Source of the DNA: Podarcis melisellensis
Lineage: Eukaryota
Length of the DNA stretch: 64,000 nucleotides
NCBI GenBank assembly: GCA_964234715.1
Contig: OZ174275.1
Strand: one strand, 5' to 3'
In this document: one piece after another, positions 15,191-23,400 of the stretch
How the letters are laid out: each line of letters starts with the position of its first letter
Position numbering within the stretch: the stretch's first letter is position 1
The notes under the pieces: model-generated
Told to the model about the DNA's origin: nothing
Seen by the model: the letters and a program-made list of their open reading frames with translations, nothing else
Database searches by the model: none
Made by a program: the position numbers and the translations under genes

Positions 15191-17606
15191 ATGCACACTA
15201 GTCTGGTTCATTACATTTTTTGTAGCATTTCAGTAGTTACCTACAAATATGCAAAGCCTAGGCAAGCAACATACACCCCTCCAAGACAACCATAACAGCC
15301 AGAAGTCCTCTCTCTCTGACTCTCTGTCTGTCTGTTCCAAATTGCAAGTTCTTGTTTCATCTCTCTCTCTCCCCTGACTCCTCATAGCTAGGAAAGTTCC
15401 TCAATATCGGTTCGGTAGGTTCCCATTATGATGCAAACTGAGCAAACCCATCCCTCTGCACTCTAGAATGCTTCCCAGTGACTGCCAGTGAATTACTTTC
15501 CTCATCTGCCCTGCCCTACTTAATTATAAAATGTAACCCAACCCAAGAGAAAAGCTTCTATTATTGTAGGAACAGTGTTGGGGAAGTGAAAAAACCTGCT
15601 TCTCTTGATCAATTTTGTTAACTGGCCAAACAAACAAACAAACAAACAAACAAAACTATCACCACCCATATTTGGCCCAGAAGCAACCAACTGTTCCTAC
15701 ACTGCCTTTTCTATGTGAGGTGTGTGTGAGAGAGTACCGCTGAGCAAAATTCAAAGAGGGCTGGCAAAGGGGTGGACACCCTGTGACTGGTTTGTTACAA
15801 TCAACTCTAAGAATGTGCTACAGAAGTCTAGTGCTGGCAGGAATTTCAAGGTAATACAGCGTGATTAGCTGTCCCAAAGCCAGAATAGCTGCACAATATC
15901 CCCTTTTGGTTAACCTGCGTAAATGAGCCTTAGTCGCAAAAAGTTCTCTTACTTAACAATAACATTCTGAATCTTTGTTTAAATTTGTTTTCTTTTTTAA
16001 CACTCTGCATTAAAAAGCAGGGTACAGAAGAAGCAGCCAAGCCCTCGTACTCTTTGATTGAGCTAGAGAAGTCAGGGCTTCAAATTAGAATAATTTTAGT
16101 GGCCAGAAACTCAGACAATAGCAAGAGCAATTTTCTTCAAATTTTGCAGGCAAATCTCGTTTGACTTCACAGCAAACCTGGCAATTTTCAGGCCAAACCA
16201 ATTTGTGTCATTTTTTCCCCCTGGCCAAAATTACAGGGGTCTAAAAATAGGGTTTAGATTATAATGACAGTTTCTGCCTTTAACCTGTGAACATGAAATA
16301 CAAGTCTCCATTATACTGCAGTTCTTGCTAATTAAGTTGGGGGGGTAGCGACGGGGGAAGAAAGTCAAGTAAACCATTAAAGCCGTAGTGTTGCCCTAAG
16401 TCAACTATTCTGAGCTTTTTCCTGCGAGCTTTTTTTGGTCTCTCGATACGAACTCAGAGATAGGACTTTAAGTAGCATCTATGAAATGTTTTTGATCATT
16501 GTCATTCTTTGACAAATGATTGTGATTTGGGGGGCACTTTTGTTCTCTTTGGGAGGGAGTCCTGCAGTGTGGAACAATTGAATAGTAGTGGCAGGTTGAT
16601 TTTAGACCCTAGACTGCAACATGCTGCTATACAAAGCTATGGACTGAACCTTAAGCGTAACAACAATTTTTTTGTTCCTATTCTGCTTTAAAGAAGCACC
16701 CACAGCCCAAAATAATTTTGTTCTTAAACAAAGCTTTCAGATAAACTACAAACTTTTTGTAAAAGCTTCACAGATATGTTGGGGGCAGAACCCAATATTG
16801 ATTCCAACCCATCTGAATTAGTTTTTTTCAGTTTCTTATATCACTTCATACAGAAAGAATCCCAAATATATTTACAGGGGCAACAACAATGAATAACCAC
16901 TTAAACAGAAAGGATTTAGATATAGTGTTGAAATCTAATCTGTTATTTAAATATCCCAGTGTGCTTTCCGAAATATGTGTCACTATAATAAAACCAATAC
17001 TTCATTGTAAAACCACGGCTGTTCAACATGTGTTTTCTTAGCTGAGCTCATGGTAAGTGACTCTTATCTGATTTGGGGTGGGTGCTGGTTTCACCCCCCA
17101 CCCCAGGAGCAGAAAATCTTTCCCCTCACAACTAGCCATTGGACGTCTCCACAACAGGACACAATGGATTCTGGGGTCACCCAGGTCCACTTCATTCCAG
17201 CTCGCTGTTGGAGAATAAAAGCCTGCTGTGGTGAGGACTGTCAACACAGTTGGTGGGAAAGCAACCTGCCTGCCTCACATGTTGCTTTTAGTTGATTAGT
17301 ATAATGACCTTGCTATGGTTTAAAAATGGTTGCCATATTTGGAGCCAGGAAGGAATTTGCCTGCAAACACATTGGACTTGTTTGGGGTTTCTGCCTTCCT
17401 CACAGATATTGTCACATCTTTTGGCAAATAAAGCATTGGGTAATCCTTAGTCTGGTTTCTGGGTCCAGGGTGATTTGGGGCATTGGCCTGACCTCAGGCA
17501 GGTGTGTTCTCAGGGTACCCTAGTAAAGCGGTCTGAATGAAAGCTTCTGTCCTGAAGCCAAGCATGGGGCAGAAGGGCCATAGAAGCTCTTTTTTTTACC
17601 CATATG

Positions 17607-17609
<3 letters not shown>

Positions 17610-17659
<50 letters not shown>

Positions 17660-17671
17660 CACACACACACA
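17610..17671. repeat. Compound (CT)n(CA)n microsatellite
   Basis: Direct reading. Confidence 0.98.
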
Positions 17672-17759
17672 AACACAACATACTCATCCCCCAGAATAGT
17701 ATTCCAGTACCTTGCTGTAGGCAGCATAACAACATATTCACAGGGCTTCAATGACTCCA

Positions 17760-18114
17760 TGACATAAAAAGAGCCTGTTGGATCTGGCCAATGGCCCATT
17801 TAGTTCAGCATCCCCACCGTGGCTGAACAAATGTCTGTGGAAAACCTGCAATTGGTATGCAAGCAAGCAGTCTCCCCTCCTGTGGTTTACAGAATCTGCT
17901 ATTCAGAAGCATGCTGCCTTCCTATGGAGGCAGAGCACAGCCACCATGGCTGGTAGCCATCGATAGCCTTATCTTCCATGAATCTGCCTAATCCTCTTTT
18001 AAAGCTATCCAATTTGGCTTTCTATCACCTGTCTGGATTCTTCCAACACGCAGCTTCATTGGATGTCCTCAATTTCTAGTTTTATGAGAAACTAGAGCTT
18101 TCTCCATGCCATGC
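17760..18114 (-). mobile_element. CR1 LINE 3' end (portion left of the PLE insertion)
   Basis: Reverse complement resembles the CR1 copy at 13140-13690 (ggacatccaatgaagctg...; gccattggcc...gatccagcagg). Boundaries approximate. Confidence 0.75.
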
Positions 18115-18218
18115 ATATATATATATATATATATATATATGCTTTCGTAGATTTTCACGGGTACAGGAATGCAGGTTTTGGTGTCCTCGGGTGTCTTCCC
18201 GTGTAAAAGTTGGGGTGT

Positions 18219-18263
18219 CTAGGCGACGTTTCGACGAGGTCTCACTCGTCATCTTCAGGCTGG
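18219..18263 (-). ncRNA. Minimal hammerhead ribozyme motif, left-arm copy
   Basis: Exact reverse complement of 19692-19736; C17 equivalent at 18225. Confidence 0.75.
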
Positions 18264-18946
18264 TGCTTTCGGCTTCTTGTTACTGGAACAGAGCAGGATC
18301 TCAGTGTTTGAGTTCCTATAAATACTGTTGAGGGGGTGTGGTGTATAGCCTCCAATGTTCTGGGCAGAGAGGAAGTTCCCAGGCTAGTGTGCCTTTTCTT
18401 CTTTTGTTCCTTAATTACTTGAGGGATATCTTGAGTGATTTCTTGAGTGATATCCTGAGTACCACTTAGGTGGGTCATTAGGTGTGGATTAGTTGCTAAA
18501 GTCTTTGTGTCTTGACCTCTTGAACTTTGTGAAGAGTTTTTCTGAGAAGATGGCTGTACTGCACTTAGTTGTGCTCTGGCTTGGCTTCGTGTATAGGGGC
18601 GAGCTGTGGTTTTGTGGCCTGTGTCAGCCAGATCTGTGTAGGGATTGCAGGGGGGTGCAGCATCCGGAGGTGCCACCATGGTTTGGCTACTGGATGGTGT
18701 CTGTAATTTATCTGTGGAGAGGGTCTGGGTTTGGGTCTGGTGTGGTTGATTGGTGATGGCGTTCTGTGTGCCTCTGGATCTGGTGTCAGTTTTTGTGGGG
18801 AGGGCTAATTTCCAGATGTCTGGCAAGCGGGATGTGTCGTCACGCTTGTTCATGTTGTGAGGGTGTTTCTCTATCTCGATGGCTTCCATGATTATTCTCT
18901 TGTGGTGATGTTCCATGTTAAAGAGCAATTTGGAATCTGCAAAATT
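18242..18946 (-). pseudogene. Inverted copy of the PLE ORF C-terminus (open frame, 228-aa ORF in track)
   Basis: ORF 18242..18928(-) matches the plus-arm translation except R in place of the stop (G at 18589 vs T at 19366). Confidence 0.85.
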
Positions 18947-19713
18947 TCAAAAAAGAAGAAAAAACTTCCTCTCTTTTCCAACACATGAAAGAAACAGGAC
19001 ACGAAATTAATTTTGCAGATTCCAAATTGCTCTTTAACATGGAACATCACCACAAGAGAATAATCATGGAAGCCATCGAGATAGAGAAACACCCTCACAA
19101 CATGAACAAGCGTGACGACACATCCCGCTTGCCAGACATCTGGAAATTAGCCCTCCCCACAAAAACTGACACCAGATCCAGAGGCACACAGAACGCCATC
19201 ACCAATCAACCACACCAGACCCAAACCCAGACCCTCTCCACAGATAAATTACAGACACCATCCAGTAGCCAAACCATGGTGGCACCTCCGGATGCTGCAC
19301 CCCCCTGCAATCCCTACACAGATCTGGCTGACACAGGCCACAAAACCACAGCTCGCCCCTATACATGAAGCCAAGCCAGAGCACAACTAAGTGCAGTACA
19401 GCCATCTTCTCAGAAAAACTCTTCACAAAGTTCAAGAGGTCAAGACACAAAGACTTTAGCAACTAATCCACACCTAATGACCCACCTAAGTGGTACTCAG
19501 GATATCACTCAAGAAATCACTCAAGATATCCCTCAAGTAATTAAGGAACAAAAGAAGAAAAGGCACACTAGCCTGGGAACTTCCTCTCTGCCCAGAACAT
19601 TGGAGGCTATACACCACACCCCCTCAACAGTATTTATAGGAACTCAAACACTGAGATCCTGCTCTGTTCCAGTAACAAGAAGCCGAAAGCACCAGCCTGA
19701 AGATGACGAGTGA
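18946..19713 (+). pseudogene. PLE ORF C-terminal fragment (GIY-YIG endonuclease second half plus S/T/Q/P-rich tail), with premature TGA at 19366-19368
   Basis: Frame reads FKKEEKTSSLFQHMKETGHEINFADSKLLFNMEHHHKRIIMEAIEIEKHPHNMNKRDD...; a CGA>TGA change relative to the other arm stops it at 19368; the same frame continues to ...HQPEDDE* at 19713. No RT domain present. Confidence 0.85.
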
Positions 19714-19736
19714 GACCTCGTCGAAACGTCGCCTAG
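19692..19736 (+). ncRNA. Minimal type-I hammerhead ribozyme motif (PLE-associated); predicted cleavage after C19730
   Basis: CUGAAGA (19697-19703), extra U, stem II GACGAG/CUCGUC closed by loop UGAGAC, GAAA (19723-19726), CG-UC giving a loop-less palindromic ACGU stem III. Stem I is only about 2 bp (GC/GC) with a weak extension. Confidence 0.75.
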
Positions 19737-19848
19737 ACACCCCAACTTTTACACGGGAAGACACCCGAGGACACCAAAACCTGCATATATATATATATAT
19801 GCAGGTTTTGGTGTCCTCGGGTGTCTTCCCGTGTAAAAGTTGGGGTGT

Positions 19849-19893
19849 CTAGGCGACGTTTCGACGAGGTCTCACTCGTCATCTTCAGGCTGG
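19849..19893 (-). ncRNA. Minimal hammerhead ribozyme motif, third copy
   Basis: Direct repeat of the 18219-18263 copy, offset 1630 bp; C17 equivalent at 19855. Confidence 0.75.
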
Positions 19894-19912
19894 TGCTTTC
19901 GGCTTCTTGTTA

Positions 19913-20490
19913 TATATTGCAGTTCTATCATGTCACCTTTTACTCGATTTTTCTCTAAACTAAAAAAAAAATCCTACAAACCTTTCTCATAGAGGAGTTG
20001 CTCTGTCCCCATATCATTTTGGTTGCCCTTTTCCAAACCTCTTCCAACTCCAACATCCATTTTGAAGTGAGAAGACCAGACAGGTACACAGGATTCCAAA
20101 TGCGGCTACACGGCATTTACATTGACAAGTTTGTTTTCCTTTCCTAATGATCCCTTGCATGGAATTTGCCCTTTTCACAAGTGAAATGATGATTACTGCA
20201 TTACTGTACACTTGTTTACACTGAATTGCCTTTGCCATTTTACCGCCTATGCACTTAGTCTCTTTAGAGCATTTCAGAATCTCTTTTTAACTATCCTGAA
20301 CAGTTTAGTATCATCAGAAAATTGGGCCACCTCGCTGCTCACCCACAACTCTAGATCATTTATGAACTAGTTAAAAAGCAACATATCCCTCTGTCCATCC
20401 ATTCAGGGAACCATCCCTTTATTCTTACTGTTTCCTAGTCTACAAGAGGAGCTTCTCCTCTTATTTCATGACTGCTCAGCTTACTCAAGA
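19913..20490 (-). mobile_element. CR1 LINE ORF2 remnant (portion right of the PLE insertion)
   Basis: Reverse complement reads tttagtttagagaaaaatcgagtaaaaggtgacatgatagaa (FSLEK.RVKGDMIE) and aaaagggcaaccaaaatgat (KRATKM), collinear with the left portion. Confidence 0.75.
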
Positions 20491-23400
20491 GTCGTTGGTT
20501 TGGGGATGTCATCTGGGAATCACTCCTTTGAATTGTTTCAGACTAGATATGTTGATCAAAATGTTATTTATTGTAACTTCCTTTCATGGCTGTCATTGTG
20601 CATTTATCCATTTTCACCGTAATGACATCTTCCTTTCTCTCTCCTCCTCTGGGTCTCATTATCTAATTCAAAACTGGCAGGATTCCTGCTTTAATTGGAT
20701 GGTCTTGGCTGTGTTTCCTGGGCACTGATACGCTGATTCCAAGGTGAAGGAGTGGTGCCCTTGTAGTTGACAGCTGGGATAGATTTCCAGCAGTCGCTGT
20801 TTAGAATTGTCACCTTGCAGCTGGGCCTTTGCCCAGACCTTGGACTGGATATTGAATGCCAAGGACCCAGAAGCCAAGTTGCAGCCTTGCACTGTGATCT
20901 GGAGTACAAGCTGGTAGCTGTCACTCTGAACAGACACTAACGGCTTCCTGCTGACATCTTCTGTAGACCATGGTGGCCAATTGGGAGTGAAGTGTGTGTG
21001 ACCAGTCAGCTAATTAGAGAAACATTGCCTGCACACAAATGAAGCCATTGATGGGAAGCCTCCACTGTATATTCACAGAACTTTTCTACATGTCCAGGTT
21101 TTATTAAGTGAGCATTTGTTATAAACTACATTAATATCTAAAATGAAAAGTCCTTAAAGCCTGCCTGGGCATATCACATTTTCCCGGGAAGCCGAAATCC
21201 ACAATGAGAGACACTTCTTTTAGTGCCAAGCGACAAACACTTTGCACATGCTTAGACACATTCTTCTTTGTCTGATTTTTGTCAGTTCCAGCCTAAGCCC
21301 TAGCTCATATTAAGCCCTGATTATAAATGAATCTTTCCACTGGGCTTTGCCAAGGAAGGAATCTTCTGATTTTGTTGACTGTTTTATCATAAACTGAATC
21401 CACAGAGTCTATAAGCACCAATAAACTTTTGTGCTTCCCCCTTTATCTCTACAATATATTTTCTTTTAATATTTACTACGAACTATTTTATTACAGGTTA
21501 GAAAGAAAACTGGGAATTATCTGACAGATAAAGAACAGAGAAGCGGCTGAACTCTAAATTACGAACCATAGCAAATAACTGTTATAATCCATTTGCGGTT
21601 TCCCACCCCGCTCTTCCCCTCCTTCCTTCTCCTGTCTTAATAGAATATAACTGATGTTTCACACTGTGGTCTGCATTATAACTTCACAGTGGCTGTAGAG
21701 ATGTATTAATGTGCTTATAAATCTTTTATATTTCAGCAGGTTTTTAAAAAATCACACCATCATTCCTAATATAATTTTGAACAGTCATAGTGGATTTTCT
21801 GGCGTTGTTTCTTTCTTTCTTTTTTTAACAAAACAGTGAATGACAAGCTTACCCTGGGCCTTTTAACTTCTCCATCCATTCCTTCTCTGGCATCTAAAAT
21901 ATGCCCCGGAGGCTGCATCAATGTTTATTTAGGAAAAACATTCATGACGACATTTCAAAATGTGCAAAGACAGATTAGTTTAGCAAAGGAAATCGCTAAT
22001 ATAATTCTGTTCATCATTTCCAGCGAGATTTTTCTTTTCCTATCCATTCTCCAGTGTGCTCTTCTAGGAGCCAAACAGAACCCCCTTCTCACAGCTGGAC
22101 CAGCCACTTAAGCAGAGCTTGGGAGGAGACCATAGCTGAGGTTTTTGCATGCAGAACATCACAGGTTCAACCCCCAGTATCTCTGATTAGGAAGTATCTC
22201 AGATAGGTGATGGGAAGGACTAGAGACAAAGTAGAGAATCCTGGCAAAAAAAGCCAAACGTTTGATCTGGTAGGCTGAATTCTGTGGGTCAAACTGAACA
22301 AGGGATAAACACGTAGCAGGCAACTACAGAACAAGTGGGGAAGTCTGATTCTCACTGCGAAGGCAGCATGTGGGAAGGAAGGGCTTATCTATTCACTCCC
22401 ACACTGAGCCTGGAACAAACATGTCCCTTGTCATTGTTCACTTCCCATGGGGAAGCCTTAAAAGAAGGTCCCCAATGGGACTTCTCTCCTAAAACTTCTA
22501 GCCCAACAGTGGATGGTGTGGTTTGCGGACGCTGTCATAGGCCAGGAGTCATCTTCACCTGCTGAACATCAGCCTGAAGAGGGGATAGGGCAGAGTGACT
22601 CCACCTGCAGCTGATCAGCCTTCAAGGACACAGAGGAGAAGGCACTGATGAGAACCAGCTAGCTTTAGCCTTCTTAAGCAGAGCTTCCAGCTGCAGTCAG
22701 GTGCTGATAACAATGCTTATTGTTCCTGGCCCCTGTCTTGTTGCTTCCTGCTCATCTTGACCCTTGACCCCCTGTTCATCGGATTCCCTGAGTCCTGGAC
22801 TGTCTGACAATGTGGATTGCTCTTCACCCGACCCTTGGACCGGACCTAACTTTGGACACTGACTCTGTCTCCAAGCAAGTACACCTCAGACACTCTTTGG
22901 GTTGGCTCCACTAAGCTCTGCACATTGCGGCTTAGCATTGAGACCATGATAGACACTTCCATTCCAATCCTGGTTGAGTACTGAAGAGATAAACCCCCTT
23001 TTCTTGTGTACTGCTTTTACAACATTAATTTAGATCCCCTGCTATATATTCAAGCACACATCTAGAGATTCTTTCATATTTTACATAGCACAATTGACAA
23101 GCCTGTTAATTCCTGGTGTGAATTAAGTGATATCATGAGAACCACAGTTCAAGGTCTCCCTGTATCCATCATAACAGCTTTGAGAAATCACATGAGCTTA
23201 CTAGTGCTAGGAGGAAGCACACTCATACTCACACCAAACACATCTAGTTTCCTACTCCATGCCATGATATGCGAGTGTGATGAAGTAATTTTTTTTTATC
23301 CGTTCACTTTAAATGCCAGGGCTATGTGTCTAAGTAGAATTTTATTAGATTGTTTTTATGGACTAATACAGACAGAGGCAGCAATGGCGCAATAAAACGG

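Follow-up and report, generated by a model that had tools for sequence, protein, structure and literature searches.

How does a genome come to carry the same 778 nt twice, in opposite orientation and almost without difference? The question is raised by a locus in the 64,000-nt stretch of DNA analysed here (the window), whose composition is vertebrate-like (GC 41.6%, CpG observed/expected 0.19). The answer that we favour, with a probability of about 0.8, is an ordinary insertion scar of a Penelope-like element (PLE) in a (TA)n microsatellite. Three 5′-truncated 3′ ends of the element make up this scar, and the two large ones would have been reverse-transcribed independently and inwards, one from each DNA end. 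As an instance of a published PLE architecture the locus is large and unusually clean, and it is not a new kind of structure.

A repeat search places the arms at 18169-18946 and 19009-19786, each 778 nt long and 62 nt apart. Compared base by base with a script, they show no indels and one mismatch, 18589 G versus 19366 T on the + strand, and the same comparison leaves no possibility of extending them outwards or inwards. In the sense of the element, the mismatch reads CGA (Arg) on the left and TGA on the right, a C-to-T change at a CpG, and the TGA at 19366-19368 closes the right-arm ORF. The right arm is taken to be the changed one because the Arg is kept at the matching place of a relative, P0002. 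The original prediction of a 778-bp near-perfect inverted repeat with a single CpG-transition stop at 19366 was exact in these respects. It had also read the 62-nt spacer (18947-19008) as PLE coding sequence continuous with the right arm, and this too is what we find: a single open frame, 18940-19368, spans the spacer into the right arm and aligns unbroken to the lizard GIY-YIG proteins P0003 and P0004.

The locus holds three further features that the original prediction did not mention: a third, shorter copy, a 28-nt extension of the left copy only, and (TA)n on both sides of the insert and, over 12-14 nt, between copies 2 and 3. The third copy, of 114 nt (19799-19912), is 100% identical to 18169-18282 and oriented like the left arm, and it faces the right arm tail-to-tail over (TA)6-7. 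Together with the last part of the right arm it forms a perfect 240-bp palindrome at 19673-19912, with 120-nt arms and 0 nt between them. The layout of the locus is as follows.

18115-18140, no strand: left part of the target (TA)n microsatellite, ∼13 units, about 26 nt (read from the sequence)
18141-18168, minus strand: 28-nt putative PLE 'tail', on copy 1 only, with no counterpart after copy 2 or copy 3
18169-18946, minus strand: copy 1 (left arm), the 3′-terminal 778 nt of the PLE, 5′-truncated at 18946 (repeat search, comparison)
18225-18258, minus strand: minimal hammerhead motif of copy 1, including the ORF stop and the next-unit ATG (pattern search)
18947-19786, plus strand: copy 2, the 3′-terminal 840 nt of the PLE (62-nt spacer and right arm), 5′-truncated exactly at 18947
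19366-19368, plus strand: premature TGA stop of copy 2, a CpG transition, with CGA retained in copy 1
19697-19730, plus strand: minimal hammerhead motif of copy 2, with ATG at 19703 and predicted cut after 19730 (pattern search, folding)
19787-19798, no strand: (TA)6 separating copy 2 from copy 3 at their 3′ ends, the centre of the 240-bp palindrome (repeat search)
19799-19912, minus strand: copy 3, the 3′-terminal 114 nt of the PLE, tailless, its 5′ end adjoining the remaining TATATT
19855-19888, minus strand: minimal hammerhead motif of copy 3 (pattern search)

Judged by its homologies, the inserted sequence is the 3′ end of a Poseidon-type PLE. The translation of the spacer and right arm is 58-77% identical to GIY-YIG-domain proteins of a lizard (Phrynocephalus). 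Pfam gave no match on either of the two window ORFs, since truncation has removed the GIY-YIG core; the lizard proteins with this core (PF01541) align at 60-75% identity, and in them the core, which contains ...GVYEIPCKVCPATYIGQT..., sits just upstream of where the window sequence is cut short. Both His of a CCHH-like motif are present in the window, within QHMKETGHEI. A C-terminal GIY-YIG endonuclease with a CCHH-like motif, canonical for endonuclease-positive (EN+) PLEs, is accordingly what the homology predicts for this element.

An exhaustive profile-free search for relatives of the fragment found 213. The long ones, P0013 (841 aa), P0081 (767 aa), P0096 (679 aa) and P0048 (544 aa), all carry RVT_1 (Pfam) and then, near the C-terminus, the stretch homologous to the fragment. 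In P0013, for example, RVT_1 occupies residues 349-535 and the fragment aligns to residues 734-816 at 48% identity. The window copy is 5′-truncated and without RT; the layout of its relatives, RT plus C-terminal GIY-YIG, appears to be the canonical endonuclease-positive PLE architecture. A Neptune/Nematis CX2-5CxxC zinc-finger-like motif upstream of the GVY.. core was looked for by eye in P0013, P0081, P0006 and P0005 and found in none of them, which fits the Penelope/Poseidon type. PLE identity, as originally predicted, is thus upheld by the C-terminal GIY-YIG homology, by RVT_1 upstream in the full-length relatives and by the three minimal hammerheads described below. Copies of the family are very numerous: contig depths over the element add up to ∼3e5, versus ∼55 for neighbouring single-copy sequence. 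Many element copies adjoin (TA)n, as seen from contig loose ends at 19785 and 19800. The C-terminal coding tail of the element also holds a 12-nt periodic repeat (18418-18460 and 19495-19537; peptide QDITQEITQDIPQ).

A reference point is provided by PAc (Poseidon_Ac), a Penelope/Poseidon-clade PLE of Anolis carolinensis whose Repbase consensus is given in File S1 of PMC11167929; our comparison was made by eye from that paper's published text and translation. Like PAc, the present element has a C-terminal GIY-YIG region with an identical order of motifs. It is distinguished from PAc as a different family, its protein being only distantly alike.

The minimal hammerhead pattern has three matches at the locus, one per copy, versus 0 expected by chance. 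The order of motifs is CUGAAGA, an unpaired U, a 6-bp stem II, GAAA and then CGUC. The core positions are complete (CUGAAGA, GAAA, the ACGU palindrome and C17), and helix I has only 2 bp. PAc likewise has a minimal core, CUGAnGA, with an unpaired U, stem II and then GAAA-CGUC; the sequence of stem II is wholly different in the two elements yet pairs in both. From the ATG at 19703 to the predicted cut after 19730 there are 25 nt, as compared with 26 in PAc. In the motif of copy 2, the stem II hairpin occurs in both the MFE and the centroid structure, with a non-significant z-score of -0.9. An Rfam scan of 17500-20500 at E<=1 reported no hammerhead family. It gave only spurious miRNA-precursor matches, which arise because of the perfect palindrome around (TA)n. 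We regard the motif as a putative ribozyme, of the minimal hammerhead type that canonical EN+ PLEs carry in their terminal repeat.

The left-arm ORF, 18242..18928(-), encodes 228 aa ending in ...HQPEDDE, its stop lying 74 nt short of the end of the copy. P0002 has the identical last seven residues, HQPEDDE, and the ∼100 residues that precede them are poorly conserved. This pattern suggests that the RNA motif constrains the end of the protein. The last codons (...PEDDE, stop) and the ATG of the next unit overlap inside the hammerhead core and stem II, at 19697-19716 and, on the minus strand, at 18239-18258 and 19869-19888. Here the element departs from PAc: its ORF stop falls within the hammerhead, overlapping the ATG that follows, and in the PAc consensus the two are separated by 126 non-coding nt.

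The 3′ ends of the copies fall at two distances after the ATG, 84 nt for copies 2 and 3 and 112 nt for copy 1. The left copy alone continues, after an element end reading ...AACCTGCAT, into a 28-nt stretch at 18141-18168. PAc has two neighbouring internal start sites of reverse transcription in an AC-rich stem-loop, one at 111-118 nt of the ORF, and the sequence between the two start sites constitutes an optional 30-40 bp tail in a fraction of genomic copies (PMC11167929). A one-sided tail is general in PLEs (Craig et al., PMC8557442). The end of copy 1 at 112 nt matches the distal start site of PAc, and both elements have insertion ends within the first ∼80-115 nt of the ORF, at an AC-rich stem-loop, and an optional tail of ∼30 nt.

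Four lines of evidence lead us to take the 28 nt as the putative tail of the element: an open frame, a stem, an independent contig and this PAc-like position. Of these, one short contig is the direct support. The N-terminal ORF 18082..18252 stays open across the stretch. In RNA folding, the stretch completes a 6-bp stem that closes the AC-rich loop (z-score -0.9, not significant). Among the public-run contigs that were placed on 17700-20300, record 8 of run X4, from an independent sample, covers 18157-18216 with 2 mismatches and includes the junction of tail and element; it probably derives from another element copy in which the tail is joined to the element. When the 38-aa N-terminal ORF, continued across the tail, was compared with full-length P0013 by BLASTP, no alignment resulted, the N-termini being too divergent. 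With its tail of 28 nt, the locus displays the canonical EN+ PLE insertion signature of 5′ truncation, an adjacent inverted copy, a one-sided tail and an AT-rich/(TA)n target.

The heads of the two large copies meet at 18946|18947. When both continuations are written out, this joint is blunt, with no base shared on either side and no microhomology. AAAATT/AATTTT, a candidate for such microhomology, is an A/T palindrome at 19004-19013 that on the same reading has no pairing role at the joint. There is no TA or other target DNA between the heads of copies 1 and 2, which indicates that both copies were made in one break. Copy 2 also begins with 62 nt that are missing from copy 1, and copy 1 ends with 28 nt that are missing from copy 2, so neither was copied from the other. 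Other copies of the element continue upstream of the truncation: loose ends at 18947 in runs X1, X5 and X23 lead into sequence coding for ...RIAEHKNAV, which matches P0003/P0004.

These features can be accounted for by target-primed reverse transcription from both DNA ends, a scheme that the strand orientations of copies 1 and 2 fit. The antisense strand is the + strand in the left arm and the - strand in copy 2, as it would be for cDNAs extended from the left and the right TA tract, respectively. We infer the following order of priming and chemistry of joining. Copy 1 would have been primed by the + strand 3′-OH of the left DNA end and started at the distal RT start site, which would yield the tail; copy 2 would have been primed by the - strand 3′-OH of the right DNA end and started at the proximal site, and would be tailless for that reason. 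The two cDNAs would then have grown towards each other and stopped after 806 and 840 nt, to be joined bluntly head-to-head by an end-to-end template jump or by end joining. The structure alone is compatible with both a template jump and host end joining. For copy 3, of 114 nt, the + strand of the same TA tract may have served as primer, in the same event via a staggered cut or in a second hit. In the same-event version, a staggered cut would leave a (TA)6-7 duplex that is extended on both strands; the 5′ end of copy 3 adjoins TA, with a possible 2-nt overlap. The 3′ ends at 84 and 112 nt mirror the two RT start sites of PAc and count for independent priming. In vitro, and unlike R2 and L1, the PAc protein both cleaves and extends the two strands of AT-rich DNA, and it is predicted to be a dimer (PMC11167929).

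Empty alleles of the site are present in public data. In a related organism, record 17 of X5 (depth 41) joins 18104 to 19917 with 22 letters between them and runs into single-copy sequence at 20049-20170, which makes it an orthologous empty site. In the same organism as the window, record 3 of X1 (depth 51.8) makes the same join over 21 letters and departs from the window at 19955, at 19957 and in a 2-bp deletion at 19962. X1 also has a SNP bubble at 17808-17928, with a window-identical haplotype at depth 23.5 and a second haplotype at depth 34.9, which fits a heterozygous or polymorphic insertion. As for the filled allele, no listed public-run read or contig on 17700-20300 leads from a unique flank into the element or spans 18946|18947. 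In the filled allele, the TA tracts (18115-18140, 19787-19798 and 19913-19918) sum to ∼44 nt, versus ∼11 in the empty alleles, which have 21-22 letters in all between 18104 and 19917. This excess reflects either a longer microsatellite before insertion or a gain of repeats during integration. The insertion flanks, 17787-18047 and 19875-20048, are moderately repeated, with summed depths from several hundred to ∼9000 versus ∼55 for single-copy sequence, and an older repeat probably contains the target TA microsatellite.

One difference in 778 nt, none in 114 nt and a surviving empty allele in the same organism together indicate that the insertion is very recent, in agreement with the original prediction, and it is probably still polymorphic. 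A single substitution, at a CpG, is too little for an absolute date.

The original prediction had explained the inverted repeat by a fold-back or template switch at AAAATT/AATTTT. In its general form, the idea is that a single cDNA snapped back, or that the RT switched onto its own nascent strand, and so made one arm from the other. The - strand can indeed be read as an 840-nt cDNA followed by a 778-nt self-copy, with a 62-nt loop continuous with one arm, and the arm boundary 19008|19009 is the centre of the 10-nt palindrome AAATTAATTT. However, the 3′-terminal bases of the cDNA would be unpaired at the return point (A·A, G·A, T·T). The 28-nt tail of the left copy is absent from copy 2, so copy 2 was not the template; the first 62 nt of copy 2 are absent from copy 1, and templating in the reverse direction is equally impossible. 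With no bases shared at the joint and sequence private to each copy, the proposed switch point falls away and snap-back of any kind becomes very improbable. A palindrome could also have been formed after insertion at the level of DNA, by break-induced fold-back repair or a replication template switch that duplicated one copy in inverted orientation. Inverted duplications containing a spacer are the typical product of fold-back repair, but the joint here is without microhomology and the outer end of the left arm is an alternative element terminus (the tail) beside (TA)n instead of inverted flank DNA. We consider this origin extremely improbable. That neither arm was templated by the other argues against cDNA snap-back and DNA-level fold-back repair, and equally against an artefact of reading through from one strand to its complement.

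Such an artefact, in which the inverted repeat would stem from a palindromic chimeric read or from a mis-join, deserves attention because no listed contig connects flank and element or spans the central joint. Assemblies are known to have difficulty with PLE structures (PMC8557442), and X1, possibly the source sample, has its empty-site contig near full depth (51.8). Nonetheless, the palindromes stop exactly at the 3′ ends of the element and include no flank sequence, and the insert sits precisely inside the (TA)n whose flanks are contiguous in the empty alleles. The asymmetry of the arms (62 nt and tail) matches PLE biology and not read-through of complementary strands, and the depths of the X1 bubble at 17808-17928, 23.5 (window-like) and 34.9, fit heterozygosity. 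An assembly or sequencing error is therefore very improbable. Also very improbable are separate insertions into the same microsatellite over time, nested in one another and with arms later homogenised by gene conversion. The abundance of the family (∼3e5 versus ∼55) and the many copies that adjoin (TA)n, with loose ends at 19785 and 19800, would favour repeated hits, and copy 3, which TA repeats set apart from copy 2, may well have arrived in a second hit. But copies 1 and 2 stand head-to-head without target DNA, some of which would be left by a second hit into flanking TA; they differ at 1 position in 778 nt, with 0 in 114 nt for copy 3, and the empty allele persists in the same organism.

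In L1 twin priming, as Ostertag & Kazazian are said to have described it in 2001, the second target DNA end also primes reverse transcription, which gives an inverted segment with a joint inside the element. There, the second priming is reportedly internal on the same RNA, and the two segments are different parts of the element that form no palindrome. Dual priming as we propose it for the PLE insertion would resemble twin priming in its use of the second DNA end, in the inverted segment and in a joint within the element. It differs in that both primings would occur at RT start sites of the element, the same 778 nt having been copied twice in opposite orientation. A literature search for Penelope together with 'twin priming' found nothing relevant.

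Closer parallels come from PLEs themselves. Published descriptions of PLEs include an inverted, 5′-truncated adjacent copy, a tail on one side only and (TA)n as the target (PMC8557442), and the inverted adjacent copies were correctly recognised as such in the original prediction. The locus shares 5′ truncation, an adjacent inverted copy, a tail at one end and (TA)n with the complex tandem/inverted PLE insertions on record (Evgen'ev & Arkhipova 2005; Arkhipova 2006; PMC8557442). It differs from them in having no full-length unit or direct pLTR and in consisting of three truncated 3′ ends, arranged head-to-head and then tail-to-tail. AT-rich targets are also shared with PAc.

What the locus offers is a clean natural record of PLE integration in which both ends of a cut (TA)n appear to have primed cDNA. 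Each DNA end would have used a different RT start site, and such sites have so far been mapped only in vitro for the Anolis element. The empty allele indicates very recent activity of the family in a lizard-like genome. The 778-bp inverted repeat and the zero-spacer, AT-centred 240-bp palindrome are likely to cause difficulties in assembly and possibly in replication. The 240-bp palindrome probably extrudes a cruciform more readily than the large inverted repeat, whose arms are 62 nt apart. With its zero spacer, the palindrome at 19673-19912 resembles the palindromic AT-rich repeats known as fragile sites.

Stranded RNA data were available from run X23, made from a related organism with the empty site. 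Reads on the arms are mostly sense to the element and are assigned to other copies because the site is empty in this organism. Almost no reads fall on the unique flanks, and the neighbourhood of the insertion is thus not obviously transcribed in the related organism, as sampled by this one RNA-seq run. The dsRNA serving as ADAR/Dicer substrate and the cruciform that the original prediction had suggested would be hypothetical consequences; this run contradicts them weakly at most, since it comes from an organism lacking the insertion and does not bear on a hairpin transcript of this locus. Among the rows listed for X23, from an organism without the insertion, no molecule starts or ends. At 18259-18261, two X23 read groups (6 and 7 reads, with perfect internal agreement) share only the part from the hammerhead core to the 3′ end and carry two different, unrelated upstream sequences. 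They may represent very short truncated copies in expressed genes or non-autonomous derivatives.

The hammerheads permit one further, more speculative reading. Two motifs on the same strand (-), at 19855-19888 and 18225-18258, bracket a unit of 1630 nt. If the - strand were transcribed, cuts after 19855 and 18225 could release a 1630-nt RNA folded into an almost perfect rod, and a PLE scar could become the birthplace of a viroid- or delta-like circular RNA. Were this true, the 1630-nt RNA would have its two ends next to each other on one unbroken complementary strand, in the form of a nicked dumbbell well suited to ligation. The bracketing of a unit by same-strand motifs recalls retrozymes and other hammerhead-bracketed circRNA units (PMC4918200, PMC5680766, bioRxiv 10.64898/2026.07.22.740005). 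Unlike in those systems, the motifs here are minimal, helix I has 2 bp, the downstream motif would be locked in the 778-bp duplex and the arrangement is known from its geometry only. We rate the rod RNA as most unlikely because the motifs are minimal and the downstream hammerhead would be sequestered in that duplex. Hammerheads on opposite strands 100-700 bp apart are a published feature of PLEs, and the - strand pair is a by-product of the insertion scar. Loci of this type are best annotated as PLE scars and not as hairpin RNA genes or ribozyme cassettes. Another simple repeat lies nearby, a (GA)n/(CT)n microsatellite at 17555-17640 that appears as RERERE and SLSLSL ORFs.
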